64,000 nt of DNA from Rebecca billardiae RCC1528 (taxonomy: Eukaryota; Protista; Haptophyta). The position numbers and the translations under genes were made by a program. Location: the NCBI GenBank assembly GCA_965240325.2, contig OZ251240.1, positions 992,001-1,056,000 on the forward strand. Reading direction: 5' to 3'. Positions 53,298-62,967 of this stretch are shown piece after piece; within the stretch, counting starts at the first letter, position 1; each line of letters opens with the position of its first letter. The notes beneath the pieces were generated by a model. It did not search any database. It had not been told where the DNA came from and worked only from the letters and a program-made list of their open reading frames with translations.

Positions 53298-54522
53298 AAC
53301 ACAGGGGGCGGGGGCACGCACGCAGCCGCGGGTGAGGGCGGCAGGGACGGAAAACACGCACGCGGGCGTCAGCAAAAACGCGTTCAGTACGGGCGCAAAT
53401 CAAAGCCGCACCGCCGCGCGGGCGCCGCGCCCCCTGCGTGCCGGGCGAGCGCGCGCACGTTGAGCTCCGTCAGGTTGCCCAGGTTGCCGATCTCCGGCAC
53501 GAGCGAGCCCACGAGCTTGTTCTCGCCGAGGTTGAGCGCGCGCAGTGACGAGAGCTGCCCAGCCTCGCACGGCAGCGTGCCGGAGAGGGAGCAACCGGCG
53601 CAGTTGAACACCTCCAGCCGGCTGAGCCCGCCGATGTGCGGCGAGATCGTGCCCGAGATACTGTTGGCCTCGAGCTCGAGCACGCGCAGCCGCGTCAGGC
53701 TCGACAGCTGCGGCAGCGTGCCCGTGAGCGCGCACGCGTTCGAGCGCAGCTCACGCAGCGCCGCCATGCCGCCAAGCTCGTGCGGCAGCGAGCCGCGCAG
53801 CCGCGCGTTGCCGTTCAGCTGGAGCACGCCCAGGTCGCGGAGGAGGCCGAGCTCGGCTGCGGCCGGGGTGGGTGGGTGGTGCGTCGGGCGAAGCGCGGGG
53901 CGACGTGGTACGCGGGCGAGCGGGCGGCGGCAGCGGAATCGTCGGTGGGGGCGGTGGCGGGGGGTCGGCCGATGCGCATCAGTACCGGGTGTGCCGCCAT
54001 GCGCGGAGCAGGGCGCGAGCCGACGGCCGTCGTGGGCTGCGCGTGGCGCGCAGCGTACTTGTGACGGTGCCACTGAGCTCGTTCTTGGCGAGGTGCAGCT
54101 CCTGCAGCTGCACGAGCCTTCCCCTGCAGATGGGAACGATCGCAGCGCCGCGCAGCAGCGCCGAGCGCCGCGCGTGCAGCCGAGGGCGTGAGCGCGCTGC
54201 GAGGGGCGCACGGGCGCCGCGCGGGCCCGACGGTGTCGTATCGCGCGCACAGCTCGGTCGGGATCGTGCCCGTGATGGCGTTCTTCGAGAGCGAGAGCAC
54301 GGTGAGCGCGACCAGCAGTCCGAGCTCGCTCGGAACGGACGACGTGACGGCGTTCTCGTCCAGGTCGATTTTCTTGAGGTGCGTCATGTGGCCGAGCTCT
54401 GTCGGGATACGCCCAGTCGTGCGGAAGAAGGCGGACACGGGCTGAGCCGCGAGCAGCGCAGGATGCAGCTCATCGTCCGCGTGTTCTCGCGCGGCCGCGG
54501 CGGCCGCGGCGGTGAGCCCCAT
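50774..54522 (-). CDS. LRR receptor-like protein (about 30 plant-type LRRs, C-terminal TM, short tail); exons ~54251-54522, 54059-54123, 53459-53856, 52994-53174, 52414-52811, 51508-52161, 50774-51265; start uncertain
   Basis: Repeated LxxLxLxxNxLSGxLPxELG; TM segment WALLELFVGCVALAAVLALVVT followed by basic residues. Confidence 0.85.
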
Positions 54523-54657
54523 GATTGTGTGCACGCCGTCGTCGTCAGCGATGACGAGTTGTTTGCGCTTCGTCACACCCGCGGGGCCGTTTCACCCTAA
54601 TCATTTATTCCGGTGCGGGTGATAACCGAGGTTTGATGCCAACCAGTCTCGCGAACG

Positions 54658-55965
54658 ATGGCCGCCGCGCGGCTGGCGCTCGCAGTTGCACTGCTGCAGC
54701 CCTCACCCGGCGCCTCGGCCGGTTTTTGGAAGGCCGTGCGGCACGCCGTCGGACCGCTCGGCCTTGAGACGCGCCATGTCGCCGACCCTGTGCCCGTTCT
54801 GCCCGCGGGCCTCTCGTTTGCGACCGTCGAGCTCGCGCAGCGCTCCGGTGGCGCGCGCGAGCTGGCGCGCTTCCTCTCCGAGCACTACCAGGGCGACGAC
54901 GCGTTCGCCGTGCGCCAGCCCTCCGCACGGCTACGATGGGTGCTCCGCGCCCCCGCCATGCGCGCCGACTGGGCATTGTGCGTGCGTGACCAGCGCAGCG
55001 GCGGCCGTCTGGTCGGCTTTGTCGCAGCCGTCCCGCGCGCGCTGTGGCTCGACGGCGCGCAAGTCGACGGCGTGGAGGTGTGCTTCCTCTGCGTGCACCC
55101 GGGGTACCGTGGGCGCGGGCTCACGCCGCTCCTGCTCCGCGAGCTCGCGCGCCGGCTCGCGCGCCACGGCGTGCGCGTGGCCGTGTACACGGGAAGCAAG
55201 CGACTACCCGGCGCGCTTGCTGAGGCGCGGTACTACCACCGGCCGCTGCAGCCGCTGCGGCTGGCTCGCAGCGGGTTCGTCGAGGTGGAGCCCGCCTTCG
55301 TGCACCTGTACGCGCTCCACTTCCGCCTGCCCCGCCGCACGGCCACCGCGGGCCTCAGGCCGATGCGCAAGGCCGACATCGCGCAGTGCGCGCGGCTGCT
55401 AGATAGCGCGCACGCGCGCGCGCGGCTCGGACTCCGCTACCGCTCGCCCGCCGAGCTGGCGCACTGGCTCCGGCCGCGCGCGCGCGAGCAGATGGCGGCG
55501 TACGTCGTGGACGAGCGCGCCACGGGCGCCGTCCGCGCCGTCGTCGCCTTCTCGCTCTCCACGGCCGTGCGCACCTGCGCCGCCGCGAACGCGACGCCAT
55601 CGGACCGCACGCGCGCGCCGTGGTGGGCTCGGCCAGTGTCGGCGGTGCGCGGGCTGTGGCCGCGCGCGAGCGTGCGCGGCGCAGTTCTGCACGTGCTCGC
55701 CGCGGACGCGTCGGTCGATGTGGCCGAGCTGCTCCGCGACGCCAGCGTCCTCGCGCGGCGGCGTGGCTGCCACGTCCTCAGCGCGCTCGAGTCGCACACC
55801 ACGCCGCGCGCGGCGCTCGGCGCCGCCAAGTTCCGCGAGGGCGACAACTCCCTCCACTTTTACCTGTACAACTATGGCCTCGCGGCCGTCAGGGCGGCGA
55901 TCAGAGGGCGCGGCGGCGGCGGCCCCGTGATGCCTGCGGGGAGCGTGGCGCTGATGCCCGTCTGA
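54658..55965 (+). CDS. Divergent N-myristoyltransferase-like protein with a hydrophobic N-terminal leader
   Basis: FLCVH..RGRGLTPLLLREL, AVYTG, YYHRPL, GLRPM, KFREGD..LHFYLYNY. Confidence 0.85.
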   Translation: MAAARLALAVALLQPSPGASAGFWKAVRHAVGPLGLETRHVADPVPVLPAGLSFATVELAQRSGGARELARFLSEHYQGDDAFAVRQPSARLRWVLRAPAMRADWALCVRDQRSGGRLVGFVAAVPRALWLDGAQVDGVEVCFLCVHPGYRGRGLTPLLLRELARRLARHGVRVAVYTGSKRLPGALAEARYYHRPLQPLRLARSGFVEVEPAFVHLYALHFRLPRRTATAGLRPMRKADIAQCARLLDSAHARARLGLRYRSPAELAHWLRPRAREQMAAYVVDERATGAVRAVVAFSLSTAVRTCAAANATPSDRTRAPWWARPVSAVRGLWPRASVRGAVLHVLAADASVDVAELLRDASVLARRRGCHVLSALESHTTPRAALGAAKFREGDNSLHFYLYNYGLAAVRAAIRGRGGGGPVMPAGSVALMPV

Positions 55966-57480
55966 TGGCGCTCGGCCCTCAGTCGCTGAGTAATCCGCGG
56001 CGAGTCGCACTGTGTAGTCTGAGTCTCAGCGCGGACCAGCAGCCCTGTCTGTGTCAGTGTGATATGCGAATCAAGCCTCGACTACGGGCGTCGGCCAACC
56101 CGTCGGCCACAGGATGCCCACTTTCGCCCGTTCGTCGGCCAGTGGCCGACTACGACGAATAAATGAATAACTAAAGGACGATATATATATATATATATAT
56201 ATATGCCCGTTGCATACCACGTCGTTACTATATATATTCATACTTTATTTTCTTTATATATATTATCGGCGCAATATTATTCAATGTCACTCCCGGCAGA
56301 TGAACGTATGGTACCCCAACGAGGCCAACGAGGTTGGTCGACTCTGTCTGGTCATGATCTCGTCGTCAGCAGAAGCTGCTTGCAGCCGACTACTGTGCTG
56401 CAGCAGCCACCGCTCGTCCGCTCGCCGCGAGGCGCCCGCAGTCGCCGCGTCCGGGCAGACGATGGCGCTGCTGGCCGAGTGCAAGCGCGAGCCGTGGCAG
56501 AAGTAGGGGTCGTCGTGGGCGCGGGCGTGGGCGCGGTCGCGGGCGCGGGTGCGGCCGCTGACTCGCCCTCTGAGTCTCGCCGGGCTCGCCGCCTGCACCT
56601 CGCGTCCTACACTGACACTCGCCGGGCCGGCGCGCAGATGCAATATAGACATAGTCTGAATATCAGATTAACACACACACACACACACCTGCCAAACTCG
56701 GTCGAGACCGCCACTCAGGGGCTCAACAAGTCCACCAGTTGGGTCGGCCGAGCCCCGGGGCCGCCCTCTCGGACTACGACTGTGCAGAGTCGGACGACAG
56801 CATATGCCGCGCGGCGGCGTGCGCACGCGCGGCCACGCGCCGGCGCCGGCGCCGGCAGTGCCGTCTGGCGCGGCCTCCGGCGGTCCGGCCGCCGGACGGC
56901 CATCGGCCAATACCCATCGGCCAGAGATGGCTGGTCGACCGCTATCCATCGGTCGGACGATCAATAAGCGAAAGTCATATAGGTGCAATTTTAGGCCCAA
57001 GTGCTACGGCGAGACTTACTCACGTCATTATTAACAGAAGGTTACCCGCTGCTCAACTTTCGTCCCGCTGGAGCGACGTCTCGACCAATGGCGCGCGTGG
57101 GATGAAAGAAAGGTTCTCTGATTCTGATCTCGCGTAATAAAATTTCTGGCGCTGGGGCCTCAGGAACGCAGCGGGTCGTCTGGCGATCGGTCTGATTGGA
57201 CGAGTGCTGCGCGTCACCGGGCCTACACTGAGGGGCTAGCCGTGCTAGCCGCGATCGGATGCCCCACATGGTCAGCAGTGAGCAGCTGTCGTCCCGAACT
57301 CTCGAAGTACAGATCGATAGTCATCGTCGCGTGCAGCACCCCCAGGTCAGGGAGCGTGCCCCCCGCGTGCGCACGTGAGCCATGCAGGCACGCAGGTCGG
57401 ATGAGCGTCTTGGCCCTGCTGGCCGCAGGCAGCGCGTGCCGAGCCAAAAGCAAGACAGTCTGGGCTCCAGCAACAGCCCC

Positions 57481-60400
57481 TCAGCCCATGGCTGGCGGAA
57501 CACACCCGGGTGGGCACTTGGGCTTGACGAAACCGCCAAAGAGTAGAGTATGGCCACCGTTCAGCATCCGCTTCTGCCGCCCACGACGGATGCGCACACA
57601 CTCAGCGGGGCAAGTGACACTTGGGGTAGGTGTGGGCTTGACGTCTGGTGCTGGCGTCGGCGTCGGCGTCGGCGCCAGCCCAACCTGCACGTCGGCAGGC
57701 GCGGCGGTGGGACGGCGCAGGGGGCGAAGGCGCGCGTCGCGCGTCAAAGGGCGCGCAGTGCAAGCACGCGCCTGGAACGCTGGGCGCACTGCGCACCGGC
57801 AGGGGCGGCGGCGACGGCGGTGGCGGTGGCGGCGGCGGCGAGGGAGGAGGCGAAGGTGGTAGCGGCGGCAGCGGCGGCGGCGGCGAGGGCGGCGGCGTGG
57901 GTGGCGGTGCGTCTGGGAGCGTCGCCGGCCTGACGGCAGGATAGCCGTGCGTGCCACCCGGGTGCCACATCTGCGTGCCGAAGACATTCCTGCAAGCAAG
58001 TGTCGATGGTACCGATGCGCGGTGACGGGGTGAGGGCACAGAGGAACACGTGGCAGCGTCAGCGGCGGGCAGGGCAAGCGTGGCGCGGCGTCGGATCGCC
58101 GGGGGCACGCTAGGACAGGCTCAAAGCACGAGCGCCGCCGCCTCTCGGCCCCGCCTATTCCTCCTGCCGCACGTACATCTCATACATAAACGTCATGAGG
58201 CCGATCTCACTTGGAAGGGTGCCATCGAACGAGTTGTCGCTCACAGCCCTGCGCAGCGCGTGAGTTGCATGCACAGACGCAGAGCACTCGAGCGGGCGGT
58301 CAGGCTCGGCATGGCGAGCACCAGCTATGCGCTCGCGTGGCTGGCAAGAATATGGAGCGCCACCACCACCAGCGCCCCTGGCCGGCGCTCAGGGAATGGC
58401 CGCGCATACATCCGCTCCATAGCCGTCATGAGGCCGATCTCGCTTGGAAGGGTGCCATCGAACGAGTTCAAGGACACATCCCTGCGCAGCGTGTGGTGGC
58501 GTGCACAAACGCACAGCACACGAGCGGGCGGTCAGGCTCGGCAGGGCAAGCACCGCGCTGCGCGCTCGCGTGGCCGGCAAGACTCTGTAGCACCACCACC
58601 ACCAGCACCCCTGGCCAGCCCTCAGTGATGGTCGCGCGTACATCTGCCGCATAGCCGTCATGAGGCCGATTTCACTTGGAAGGGTGCCATCGAACGAGTT
58701 GTCATTCACCAGCCTGCGCAGCGCGTGAGTTGCATGCACAGACGCAGAGCACACGAGCGGGCGGTCAGGCTCGGCAGGGCGAGCGCCGCGATATGCGCGC
58801 GCGTGGCTGGCAAGAATATCTAGTAGCACCACCACCACCAGCACCCCTGGCCGGCCGATGGTCGCGCGTACATCTCAACCATAGCCGTCATGAGGCCGAT
58901 CTCACTTGGAAGGGTGCCGCCGAACGAGTTGTAGTTCACAGACCTGCACAGCGCGTGGTGGCGCGCACAAACACACAGCACGCGAGCGGGCGGTCAGGCT
59001 CGCGCAGGGCGAGAGCAGCGCTATGCGCTCGCGTGGCTGGCAAGAATATGTAGCACCACCACCAGCAGCACCCCTGGCCAGCCCTCAGTGATGGTCGCGC
59101 GTACATCTGCCCCAGAGCCGTCATGAGGCCGATCTCACTTGGAAGGGTGCCATCGAACGAGTTGAAGATCACCACCCTGCGCAGCGCGTGAGTTGCATGC
59201 ACAGACGCAGAGCACACGAGCGGGCGGTCAGGCCCAGCAGGGCGAGCACCTCGCCGCGCGCTCGCGTGGCTGGCAAGACTCTGTAGCACCACCACCACCA
59301 CCACCCCTGGCCCGCAATCAGTGATGGTCGCGCGTACATCGACTGCAGAGCCGTCATGAGGCCGATCTCACTTGGAAGGTTGCCATCGAACGAGTTGAAG
59401 TGCGCATACCTGCGCAACGCGTGGTGGCGTGCACAAGCGCATAGCACGCGAGTAGGCAGTCAGGCTCGGCAGGGCGAGCGCTGCGATGTGCGCGCGCGTG
59501 GCTGGCAAGAATATCTAGTAGCACCACCACCAGCAGCACCCCTGGTCTGCCCTGGGTGATGGTCGCGCGTACATCTCCGTCAGAGCCGCCAAGGTGCCGA
59601 TCTCACTTGGAAGGGTGCCATCGAACGAGTTGGTATTCACACCGCTGCGCAGCGCGTGGTGGCATGCACAAACGCACAGCGCACGCATGGGCGGTCAGGC
59701 TCGGCAGGGCGAGCGCAGCGATGTGCGCGCGCATGGCTGGCAAGAATATCTAGTAGCACCACCACCAGCAGCACCCCTGGCCGGCCGATGGTCGCGCGTA
59801 CATCTCAACCATAGCCGTCATGAGGCCGATCTCACTTGGAAGGGTGCCGCCGAACGAGTTGTCGACCGCAGACCTGCGCAGCGCGTGAGTTGCATGCACA
59901 CACTCGCAGCACACGAGCGGGTGGTCAGGCTCGGCAGGGCGAGCGCCGCGATATGCGCGCGCGTGGCTGGCAAGAATATCTAGTAGCACCACCACCACCA
60001 GCACCCCTGGCCAGCACTCGGTGCATGGTCGCGCGTACATCCGCGACAGAGCCGTCAGGAGGCCGATCTCGCTTGGAAGGGTGCCAGAGAACGAGTTGGA
60101 GTCCAAAGACCTGCGCAGCCGGAGTGGCGTGCACAAACGCACAGCGCACGCGTGGGCGGTCAGGCTCGCGCAGGGAGAGCGCCGCGCTGTGTGCTCGCGT
60201 GGCTGGCAAGAATATGTAGCACCGCCACCCCCCAGCACCTCTGGCCCGCGCTCAGTGATGGTCGCGCGTACATGTACGTCAGAGCCGTCATGAGGCCGAT
60301 CTCACTTGGAAGGGTGCCATCGAAAAAGTTGGATGGCGAATTCCTGCGCAGCGCGTGGTGGCGTGCACAAACGCATAGCACGTGAGTGGGCGGTCAGGCT

Positions 60401-61952
60401 CGGCAGGGCGAGCGCCTCGCTGTGCGCTCGCGTGGCTGGCAAGAATATGTAGCATCGCCACCACCCCCAGCACCTCTGGCCCGCGCTCAGTGATGGTCGC
60501 GCGTACATCAGCACCATAGCCGTCAGGAGGCCGATCTCGCTTGGAAGGGTGCCAGAGAACGAGTTGGCGAACACAGTCCTGCACAGCGCGTGAGTTGCAT
60601 GCACACACGCAGAGCACACGAGCGGGCGGTCAGGCTCGGCAGGACGAGCGCCGCGATATGCGCGCGCGTGGCTGGCAAGAATATCTAGTAGCACCACCAT
60701 CACCAGCAGCACCCCTGGCCGGCCGATGGTCGCGCGTACATCTCAACAATAGCAGTCATGAGGCCGATCTCACTTGGAAGGGTGCCATCGAACGAGTTCA
60801 AGTTCACAGACCTGCACAGCGCGTGGTGGCGCGCACAAACACACAGCACGCGAGCGGGCGGTCAGGCTCGCGCAGGGAGAGCGCCGCGCTGTGTGCTCGC
60901 GTGGCTGGCAAGAATATGTAGCACCGCCACCCCCAGCACCTCTGTCCCGCGCTCAGTGATGGTCGCGCGTACATGTACGTCAGAGCCGTCATGAGGCCGA
61001 TCTCACTTGGAAGGGTGCCATCGAAAGAGTTGGATCGCAATTTCCTGCGCAGCGCGTGGTGGCGTGCACAAACGCATAGCACGTGAGTGGGCGGTCAGGC
61101 TCGGCAGGGCAAGCGCCTCGCTGTGCGCTCGCGTGGCTGGCAAGAATATGTAGCACCGCCACCCCCAGCACCTCTGGCCCGCGCTCAGTGATGGTCGCGC
61201 GTACATGTACGTCAGAGCCGTCATGGTGCCGATCTCACTTGGAAGGGTGCCAAACAAGTTTTCGGTCACAGTCCTGCGCAACGAGTGGCGTGCGAACACA
61301 GCGGGCAGGCAAGGACGGAGAAGCCGCGTCAGCGCACGCTGCCCGTTCGTCGCAGCTGCCTACTGCCAGGCGACCGCACGACTGCGTGCAGAAGCGCACG
61401 GCGCGAGCCCTGCTGCTGTGGCCGTCTCGGTTGGTTGGTCGCAGAGGACACGTGCAGTCTCGCACTGGTGCGCGTCCTATCGCCGCTGCGTGCTCATTGG
61501 CTGGCTGGCTGGCTGCCCCCGCGCGCGCCGCGCCGTGCGCGTACAGCTCGGTCAGGGCGGTCAGCGTCCCGATCTCAGTTGGCATCGTGCCAGTGAGGCC
61601 TGAAAAGTCCTCCTGCGCACGTGCGACGCACGCGCGGCGAGTCGCAGATGGTGGGCCAGGCGACCGTGTGGCGAGCGCGTCATCACTCCTCGCGGCAGCG
61701 CATGCCGATTGCCGTCGCACGCATGTGCGGCATGGCCGCTCGCCGGCTCGCGCGCCATGAGCCAAGGTTTGCCGCGCCGTCGCGATGGGCGCGGGCGCCT
61801 CGCGCACGCGCGACAGCCGCGACACGCACATTGATGCTTGTGCACGCAGCCGGGCTGGCGATGCAGTTCGTGTAAGCGGTGCTGGTCTCGAAAGGGACGG
61901 CGGCAGCCGCGCCCGACGCCAGCAGACTTATCGTCACGAGCGCGACACCCAT
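57481..61952 (-). CDS. Secreted LRR protein, ~530 aa, 18 exons: 61830-61952, 61545-61612, 61205-61273, thirteen 72-bp exons (60973-61044, 60740-60811, 60507-60578, 60272-60343, 60039-60110, 59802-59873, 59573-59644, 59338-59409, 59105-59176, 58872-58943, 58642-58713, 58410-58481, 58177-58248), 57797-57989, 57481-57684; alternative ATG at 61988
   Basis: Signal peptide MGVALVTISLLASGAAAA, Cys cap CIASPAAC, 15 LRRs of type xVxxNSFDGTLPSEIGLMTAxxxM, Pro-rich stalk, Cys-containing tail. All junctions are GT-AG and the summed CDS of 1593 nt is in frame. Confidence 0.85.
58177..61273 (-). repeat. Tandem exon+intron cassette array, period ~229-237 bp, 14 exons
   Basis: Recurring ccgatctcacttggaagggtgcc (exon) and gcggtcaggctc...gcgtggctggcaaga...atggtcgcgcgtac (intron). 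Confidence 0.95.
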
Positions 61953-62159
61953 GGCATGCCGCAGCCCCGTCGTCACGCTGGTGGGCATGGGCCTTGATGC
62001 GGCTGAAAGATGGTCGCGTGCAGATCTGGCGCACCGGCGCGGAGGCACCCGCCCTCGGCCCTCGCAGGTCGCCGCGAAGATTCTACTAGGTGCGGCAACG
62101 CGCCAGCACTCACCTGTTGCGCCGGTCTGTTTTGTGGCGGTGTCGTTGTGCACTACTGT

Positions 62160-62298
62160 TTACTAAGAATAAGAGACGCACACAGCTCATCAGGCAGGCG
62201 AGATTGACGCCCGCCAACTGTTGGCGGGCTACGGCCCTTGGGCGGGCGTCATCAATCTCGCCTGCCTGAGCTGTGTGCGTCTATAATATTCTTAGTAA
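62160..62298. other. ~140-bp imperfect inverted repeat (MITE-like or RNA hairpin)
   Basis: Left arm ttactaagaat..agacgcacacagctc..caggcaggcgagattgacgcccgcc pairs with ggcgggcgtca..tcaatctcgcctgcctgagctgtgtgcgtct..attcttagtaa. Confidence 0.85.
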
Positions 62299-62967
62299 GC
62301 TGTGTTGGATCATGGTTGGATTATATTGCGTCAATCACGCCTGCTGCATGAACCAAGCGTGCACGTTAAATAATCAGCGCATAGGAAATCACGCCTTAAC
62401 CAACATAACCAAGTTGAAAGTGTGCACGTTAAAGCACGTATGATTTAATAACGACATAGGTCGTAAAGTATTGAGAGTTGAGACGACGACGGCTCAAGGT
62501 CTCCTGATTCGTCGCAATGGCCCTTTTCCCTTATGGCGGGCTATTATATTCCCCCCCGTGACGACGATTCAGGAGAACCCGCCGATGTGCGGCTTGTTGT
62601 CGTATGGGGGGGGTTGGGTTTTGTATATGGGGGGGGTAAAACCACCCCTCGCGGAGAGGCTCAGGGACGGACGCAAAGATGGGCATGCACTCCCCTCCGG
62701 CCCTCGCCGTCGAGCGGTCGAGGACAATCCGGAGGACGCCCGTGTCGGTATGGCACCCGCTGGGGCCGGGTCGCCGCGGCCGCACATGCTCGCGCAAGGC
62801 GCCTTTGAAAATGATGACCCCAAACGACCCCAGCCCAAAACTAACCCGGGGGGCGCGTGCGCACGCACGGCGCGGGCTTCGTCTGGGCAGCCTGCGACCA
62901 TAAGCAGCCTGGCAGCAGTGCGTCGGCCGTCGTGGTGAACCGATGATCCATCTGATGCGGCTGCGGC

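Follow-up and report, generated by a model that had tools for sequence, protein, structure and literature searches.

Predicted concave-face codons outpace neighboring introns in a tandem array of leucine-rich repeat exons from a GC-rich, alga-like eukaryote

The window analyzed here is the whole 64,000-nucleotide (nt) stretch of Rebecca billardiae RCC1528 DNA at C23:992001-1056000 in a 72-Mb, 41-contig assembly. Its guanine-plus-cytosine (GC) content is ~70%, and the genome is that of a very GC-rich, alga-like eukaryote. On the minus strand lies a predicted gene for a leucine-rich repeat (LRR) protein, within which 58177-61276 is occupied by 14 tandem units of ~233 bp each. Every unit consists of one LRR exon (72 nt in 13 cases and 69 nt in one) and one GT-AG intron of 157 to 165 nt that begins with GTACGCGC and ends with CTGCGCAG, and Tandem Repeats Finder returns the region as a single array (58191-61252, period 233, 13.1 copies, 83% matches). 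Base 1 of each exon closes a codon whose first two bases stand at the end of the exon before it, usually an ATG divided into AT and G. Because the codon is split after its second base at every junction, all of the introns are phase 2 and all of the exons are symmetric. All 14 array exons retain their length, frame, and splice sites, and the gene model predicted from the sequence is complete, with canonical splice sites throughout. The protein would begin with a signal-peptide-like segment, a character read solely from a hydrophobic stretch in exon 1, and would end in a proline-rich tail (Table 1).

By motif, every unit appears to encode an LRR of the LxxLxLxxNxFxGxLPxEIGxM type. All 13 of the 72-nt exons fit a 24-residue, plant-type repeat, x4-N-x-[FL]-x-G-x-L-P-x-x-I-G, with leucine or methionine at the scaffold positions. 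Pfam gave no hits at E ≤ 1 for the single 23-residue LRR exons, which are short pieces and were searched singly, or for the terminal exons. The repeat register runs a beta-strand across the splice junction as L(codon 21)-x(22)-x(23)-M(split codon)-x(1)-V/L(2)-x(3)-x(4)-N(5), such that the five x positions of LxxLxLxx are codons 22, 23, 1, 3, and 4. Thus, every intron splits one beta-strand, and each exon carries the second half of one surface patch and the first half of the next. Residues at the x positions of LxxLxLxx make up the exposed concave face in solved LRR proteins (restated in PMC3341825). By repeat register and by analogy with established LRR structures, therefore, these codons would be placed on a ligand-binding concave face, and the exposed sites that an earlier, sequence-only reading of this DNA had assigned to codons 1 to 4 and 21 to 23 match the same five positions.

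These codons are far more variable than the rest of the unit. Across the 13 aligned units, mean pairwise diversity per site was 0.117 in introns and 0.081 in the exon core, but 0.54 at codons 1 to 4 and 22 to 23, hereafter called the hypervariable codons (Mann-Whitney p=1.6e-10 for hypervariable versus introns). Three or more alleles were present in 12 of 18 hypervariable columns versus 9 of 169 intron columns, and the most variable 12-nt intron window (0.31) fell short of the exon edge (0.52), a value that no intron window equaled. Thus, per-base diversity in the full alignment bears out the claim of the sequence-only reading that coding sites at exposed positions outpace the neighboring intron, and the excess sits at the exon edges. 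The contrast was also seen in a less biased neighbor test, in which the nearest neighbor of each unit was picked by one 100-nt flank only and everything else was then measured: the difference was 0.10 for the other flank, 0.07 for the core, and 0.41 to 0.45 for the hypervariable codons. Each of the 13 units has a 5' patch of its own, and even the most similar patch in a set of 78 cassettes, drawn from eight arrays, mismatches it at 2 or more of 12 nt. Array-wide, nonsynonymous divergence (pN) was 0.67 at the hypervariable codons versus a synonymous divergence (pS) of 0.07 in the core. Finally, in young pairs, defined as those in which both flanks are at most 4% diverged, divergence was 2.7% in the flanks, 8% in the core, and 25% at the hypervariable sites, and the changed hypervariable codons comprised 0 synonymous and 15 nonsynonymous changes.

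The pair that first drew attention consists of exons 60272-60343 and 60973-61044, both on the minus strand, both 72 nt, and both flanked by AG and GT. They differ at four sites (60340/61041, 60338/61039, 60335/61036, and 60326/61027), which alter codons 1, 2, 3, and 6 (N/K, S/L, P/R, and F/S) by one nucleotide each, with no difference in the remaining 68 nt. In the upstream introns (60344-60506 and 61045-61204), exactly two substitutions and one 3-nt indel separate the copies. Alignment therefore gives the same picture that had been drawn by eye: near-identical adjacent introns beside four exon differences, all within the first six codons and all nonsynonymous. The near-identical block is 353 nt long and extends into the downstream intron, with 3 substitutions in 277 aligned intron nt (1.1%) and two indels, and similarity falls abruptly past 60153/60855. 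Four of the seven substitutions in the block lie within 18 nt, at exon nt 4 to 18 (Fisher p=1.6e-4). When the hypervariable class was predefined from other arrays, 3 of the 7 fell in its 18 of 349 sites (p=0.004), and hypervariable divergence in the pair was ~15-fold over that of the adjacent intron. Neither patch has a closer relative than the other, and single nucleotides in four codons set them apart. When the whole 72-Mb genome was searched with each focal 27-mer at up to three mismatches, only its own site matched and no donor was found; microconversion from a donor was thus rejected for these patches. Because the patches are mutually closest, differ by single-nucleotide changes, and have no genomic donor, point substitution is required, which indicates that they arose by descent with point substitution.

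Table 1. Features of the LRR gene and its array, in window coordinates
Feature	Position	Strand	Basis or remark
Exon 1: ATG, hydrophobic signal-peptide-like N-terminus, short Cys-containing cap, GT donor at end	61830..61952	-	translation, ATG position
Divergent first LRR exon, 68 nt, phase 0 to 2	61545..61612	-	motif G-T-M-P-T-E-I-G, AG/GT borders
69-nt LRR exon, one codon short, opening the homogeneous array	61205..61273	-	exon sequence
Thirteen 72-nt LRR exons with 157-165 nt GT-AG phase-2 introns between them	58177..61044	-	flanking AG/GT
Starts of the 72-nt exons	58177, 58410, 58642, 58872, 59105, 59338, 59573, 59802, 60039, 60272, 60507, 60740, 60973	-	
Young duplicated or converted block, copy A (intron, exon, part of next intron)	60154..60506	-	pairwise alignment
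Young duplicated or converted block, copy B	60856..61204	-	pairwise alignment
Hypervariable codons 1-4 of exon 60272-60343	60331..60342	-	codons 22-23 at 60274-60279
Hypervariable codons 1-4 of exon 60973-61044	61032..61043	-	codons 22-23 at 60975-60980
Last exon as read: proline-rich (SPPP/PPPP), extensin-like tail to stop at 57605; may be spliced further	57605..57989	-	

A second pair has a different history. Exons 59802-59873 and 58872-58943 do differ only in codons 2 to 4, at 4 nt, as had been described, and the difference had been taken as another case of focused substitution. The unit at 58872, however, shares the last 56 intron nt with the unit at 60740 without a difference and departs from it at 1 of the first 12 exon nt, and over exon nt 13 to 72 it matches the unit at 59802 exactly. 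Exon 58872 is thus a recombinant mosaic, with a 5' part like 60740 and a 3' part like 59802, and the difference in codons 2 to 4 reflects a crossover or conversion breakpoint and not focused mutation. Mosaics of this kind are not confined to one exon, as 38% of informative site pairs fail the four-gamete test and the nearest neighbor of a unit shifts along its length.

Seven further arrays of the family were compared, on C36, C7 (two), C10, C12, C20, and C3, and the neighbor test gave the same contrast between intron and hypervariable codons in all seven. Between arrays, introns are 15 to 32% diverged and the core exon is 12 to 23% diverged, and unit periods range from 194 to 237 nt. Constraint on the introns was rejected by this divergence and change in length, and synonymous core divergence within the array (0.07) is as low as intron diversity. 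Thus, the introns and scaffold are young rather than frozen. The closest relative of the array is its sister on C36 (L032, G000:C36:672500-681500), in which codons 1 to 4 read DVST in five of six units and DVSS in the sixth. Codons 22 and 23 of that array vary (RS, LS, FG, FI, and EF twice) beside upstream introns that are 0 to 3% diverged, and variability there is limited to half of each binding patch. Another array is present in two copies, L038 (G000:C3:1049000-1057000) and L039 (G000:C4:1-5000), that are >99% identical, with 3 differences in ~2300 nt, after which C4, a short contig of 17 kb, lacks one 211-nt cassette (YLQF...ALID). Either unequal crossing-over has altered copy number between haplotypes or the end of the contig has collapsed, and the cassette difference suggests ongoing unequal exchange.

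The introns also carry an octamer, GCTGGTGG, that is the Chi sequence of Escherichia coli. It is found on the gene strand in 7 of 13 introns and six times in L032, which holds the C36 sister array; elsewhere in the window and in the other arrays it is rare or missing. As a general feature of the family the Chi-like octamer was rejected, being confined to this array and its closest relative, and it is probably a lineage-specific intron sequence.

How the patches came to differ so much more than the DNA around them is likely a matter of two processes. We consider it probable that the cassettes are amplified and homogenized by unequal crossing-over and gene conversion and that diversifying selection acts on the concave face. 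The locus would be a germline gene whose LRR product is secreted, ends in a proline-rich tail, and has each repeat encoded by its own 72-nt exon. Because all of the introns are phase 2, any exon-intron unit could be duplicated, deleted, or exchanged with the frame left intact. Exchange between units, by unequal crossing-over and gene conversion, would keep the introns and scaffold codons young and alike and would give rise to recombinant units, and because the intron splits a beta-strand, recombination within introns would also reshuffle half-patches. The five solvent-exposed beta-strand residues would gain and keep replacements under diversifying selection, and the result would be a different patch in each unit on the concave, ligand-binding face. 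The sequence-only reading had offered either strong diversifying selection or targeted mutagenesis as the cause. The first is favored by the replacements in young pairs, the unique patches, and the unconstrained introns, and the second is disfavored, as neither a donor nor a base-specific spectrum was found.

Several points weigh against selection with homogenization. Recombination makes tree-based tests invalid, and the hypervariable codons are saturated array-wide, such that their pN/pS of 1.9 is imprecise. Apparent synonymous divergence within the hypervariable codons is also high (0.35), and the same residue is encoded by a different codon in 19% of cases versus 6% in the core, which would be unexpected from selection alone. 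Moreover, the focal pair was picked by eye out of 13 units, and selection is inferred from paralogous repeats of one genome, as distinct from orthologues or polymorphism. Finally, expression and splicing of the gene are predictions.

The most serious competitor is that the patches are old and only their flanks are young. Introns and scaffold would be repeatedly homogenized, selection would reject conversion tracts that overwrite a patch, and substitution would not be accelerated at all. Pervasive mosaicism in the array and the raised synonymous divergence inside the hypervariable codons speak for this explanation, as does the similarity of hypervariable divergence within arrays (0.54 to 0.60) and between them (0.58 to 0.63). 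Moreover, there are three pairs of units in which the last 56 intron nt are identical yet the adjacent 12 exon nt differ at 1 to 5 sites. The youngest pair, however, argues otherwise: its patches are mutually nearest, differ by one nucleotide in each of four codons, and sit in a continuous, near-identical block. Two conversion tracts halting around a 15-nt island would fit those data less well than does descent with point substitution. We therefore regard old patches between young flanks as unlikely, though worth keeping in mind.

Targeted mutagenesis of the exon edges, whether germline or somatic and whether by hypermutation or by templated microconversion, seems very improbable. Divergence is sharply local, as noted for the youngest pair, and third positions of the hypervariable codons are raised (0.39 versus 0.08 in the core), and both points speak for such a mechanism. 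The raised third-position and synonymous divergence and the more frequent codon differences, however, fit convergence, older patch ancestry, or extra mutation alike. Moreover, no genomic donor exists for either focal version, and changed codons are nearly all replacements. The mutation spectrum, which the sequence-only reading had proposed to examine, gave no base-specific signature: the transition/transversion ratio was 0.41 at hypervariable sites and 1.30 in introns, and the focal changes were T/A, C/T, C/G, and T/C. A ratio of 0.41 is as expected for saturated or selected sites. The 12 nt equivalent to codons 1 to 4 are nearly invariant in L032 while codons 22 and 23 vary, which argues against a process aimed at fixed DNA positions. 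The C3 and C4 copies show 0 differences at 126 hypervariable sites, a comparison of low power, as only 3 differences precede the indel. Mutagenesis of the diversity-generating retroelement type was rejected separately, as there is no second copy of either focal patch and the changes are not adenine specific. A dedicated system for exon-edge diversification, by localized hypermutation or microconversion in the germline or in clonal lineages, is if anything a shade more doubtful; were it true, a unicellular alga would possess an anticipatory recognition repertoire.

Still harder to sustain is the proposal that the variable codons are neutral and that the introns owe their conservation to a function. 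Near-invariance is indeed seen over ~14 nt at the start and ~12 nt at the end of the intron, and arrays on different contigs have introns that can be aligned. Introns nevertheless diverge between arrays, and change in length, at least as fast as the core exon, synonymous core sites have diverged as little as introns have, and neutrality of the codons is contradicted by the replacement bias in young pairs. Least plausible of all is an assembly or sequencing artifact, as although tandem arrays are prone to collapse (and two exact look-ups of open reading frames found no independent contigs over this one), the differences are substitutions at structurally meaningful codons rather than indels in 14 otherwise intact exons, eight arrays share the pattern, and 2456 nt of the window, lying ~2 kb away from the array, are matched without a difference by an assembly of an independent read set (Logan, ERR14847148). 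The conserved exon core found no match in a metagenome scan.

The closest parallels to the array come from brown algae and ciliates. In Ectocarpus, ROCO and LRR-kinase genes encode one LRR per exon, undergo intense exon shuffling, show positive selection on the concave face, and have been proposed as candidate immune receptors (PMC3341825; PMC11378527), and the exon-shuffled pattern has been extended to other brown algae (PMC11378527). The array resembles them in having one LRR per exon, shuffled cassettes, and an excess of replacements at predicted concave-face sites. The gene differs, however, in that it lacks a ROC-COR GTPase or kinase domain and has instead the signal-peptide-like start and proline-rich tail, the genome is ~70% GC and not that of a brown alga, and the intron provides a direct internal neutral yardstick. 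Membership in the ROCO (LRR-ROC-COR) class was rejected, as the exons that flank the array encode that start and tail and no Pfam domain. Tetrahymena contains thousands of LRR genes built of tandem units of an exactly 90-bp exon plus an intron, with an extreme phase-2 bias and a lineage-specific expansion by unequal crossing-over (PMC6564038). Tandem exon-intron units at the nucleotide level, equal exon length, and phase-2 introns are shared with the present array, but the exon here is 72 nt and not 90 nt, the repeat is of the 24-residue plant type, and no association with retrotransposons was seen in the array. Taken together, a repeat per exon, equal exon length, one phase, exchange of units, and replacements at the concave face place the array among exon-cassette LRR genes of the Ectocarpus and Tetrahymena kind.

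Likeness to recognition proteins of plants and lampreys is more limited. Plant receptor-like proteins of the Cf-4/Cf-9 type and PGIP have a hypervariable xxLxLxx and diversifying selection on the five exposed beta-strand residues (stated in general terms in PMC3341825), and their 24-residue repeat class, LxxLxLxxNxLxGxIPxxLGxL, is the same as the one predicted here. Plant LRR domains, however, are usually encoded by one or few exons, whereas each repeat in this gene is its own exon with a homogenized intron. The lamprey VLR (variable lymphocyte receptor) is assembled from an incomplete germline gene and flanking donor cassettes by deaminase-driven copy choice, and LRR cassettes with a variable concave face are a point of resemblance. 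A VLR-like organization was nonetheless rejected, as the gene is complete and conventionally spliced by prediction, and no donor bank for the focal patches was found genome-wide.

The pattern is real, but its kind is already known from brown algae and ciliates, and no new mechanism is shown. Homogenized introns provide a built-in neutral reference for LRR divergence, against which the five residues predicted to face a ligand have changed faster than the adjacent noncoding DNA, by ~5-fold in raw terms and by 15-fold in the youngest pair. The exon-cassette LRR design of brown algae and ciliates would thereby reach a very GC-rich, alga-like eukaryote and a secreted protein whose tail is proline-rich. 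We speculate that the family is a candidate surface or extracellular recognition system, perhaps for pathogens, mates, or symbionts.

The surroundings of the gene hold further features. An imperfect foldback at 62155-62303, ~200 nt upstream of the ATG of the LRR gene, is locally richer in AT and contains nested inverted repeats, including an 18-nt perfect pair (62190-62207/62252-62269). It may be a small foldback or an element like a miniature inverted-repeat transposable element, and G-runs come next at 62550-62640. On the minus strand at 53600-54580 is another LRR gene, with repeats of a different type, which lies upstream of an intronless gene for N-myristoyltransferase (54658-55965) and is divergent from it. 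The Logan contig that matches this other LRR gene has LRR Pfam families on record, and the neighboring gene is identical in the independent read-set assembly. Finally, a short AT-rich island with a (TA)n run stands out from the ~70% GC background at 56160-56290, in the interval that separates the N-myristoyltransferase gene from the 3' end of the array-bearing LRR gene.

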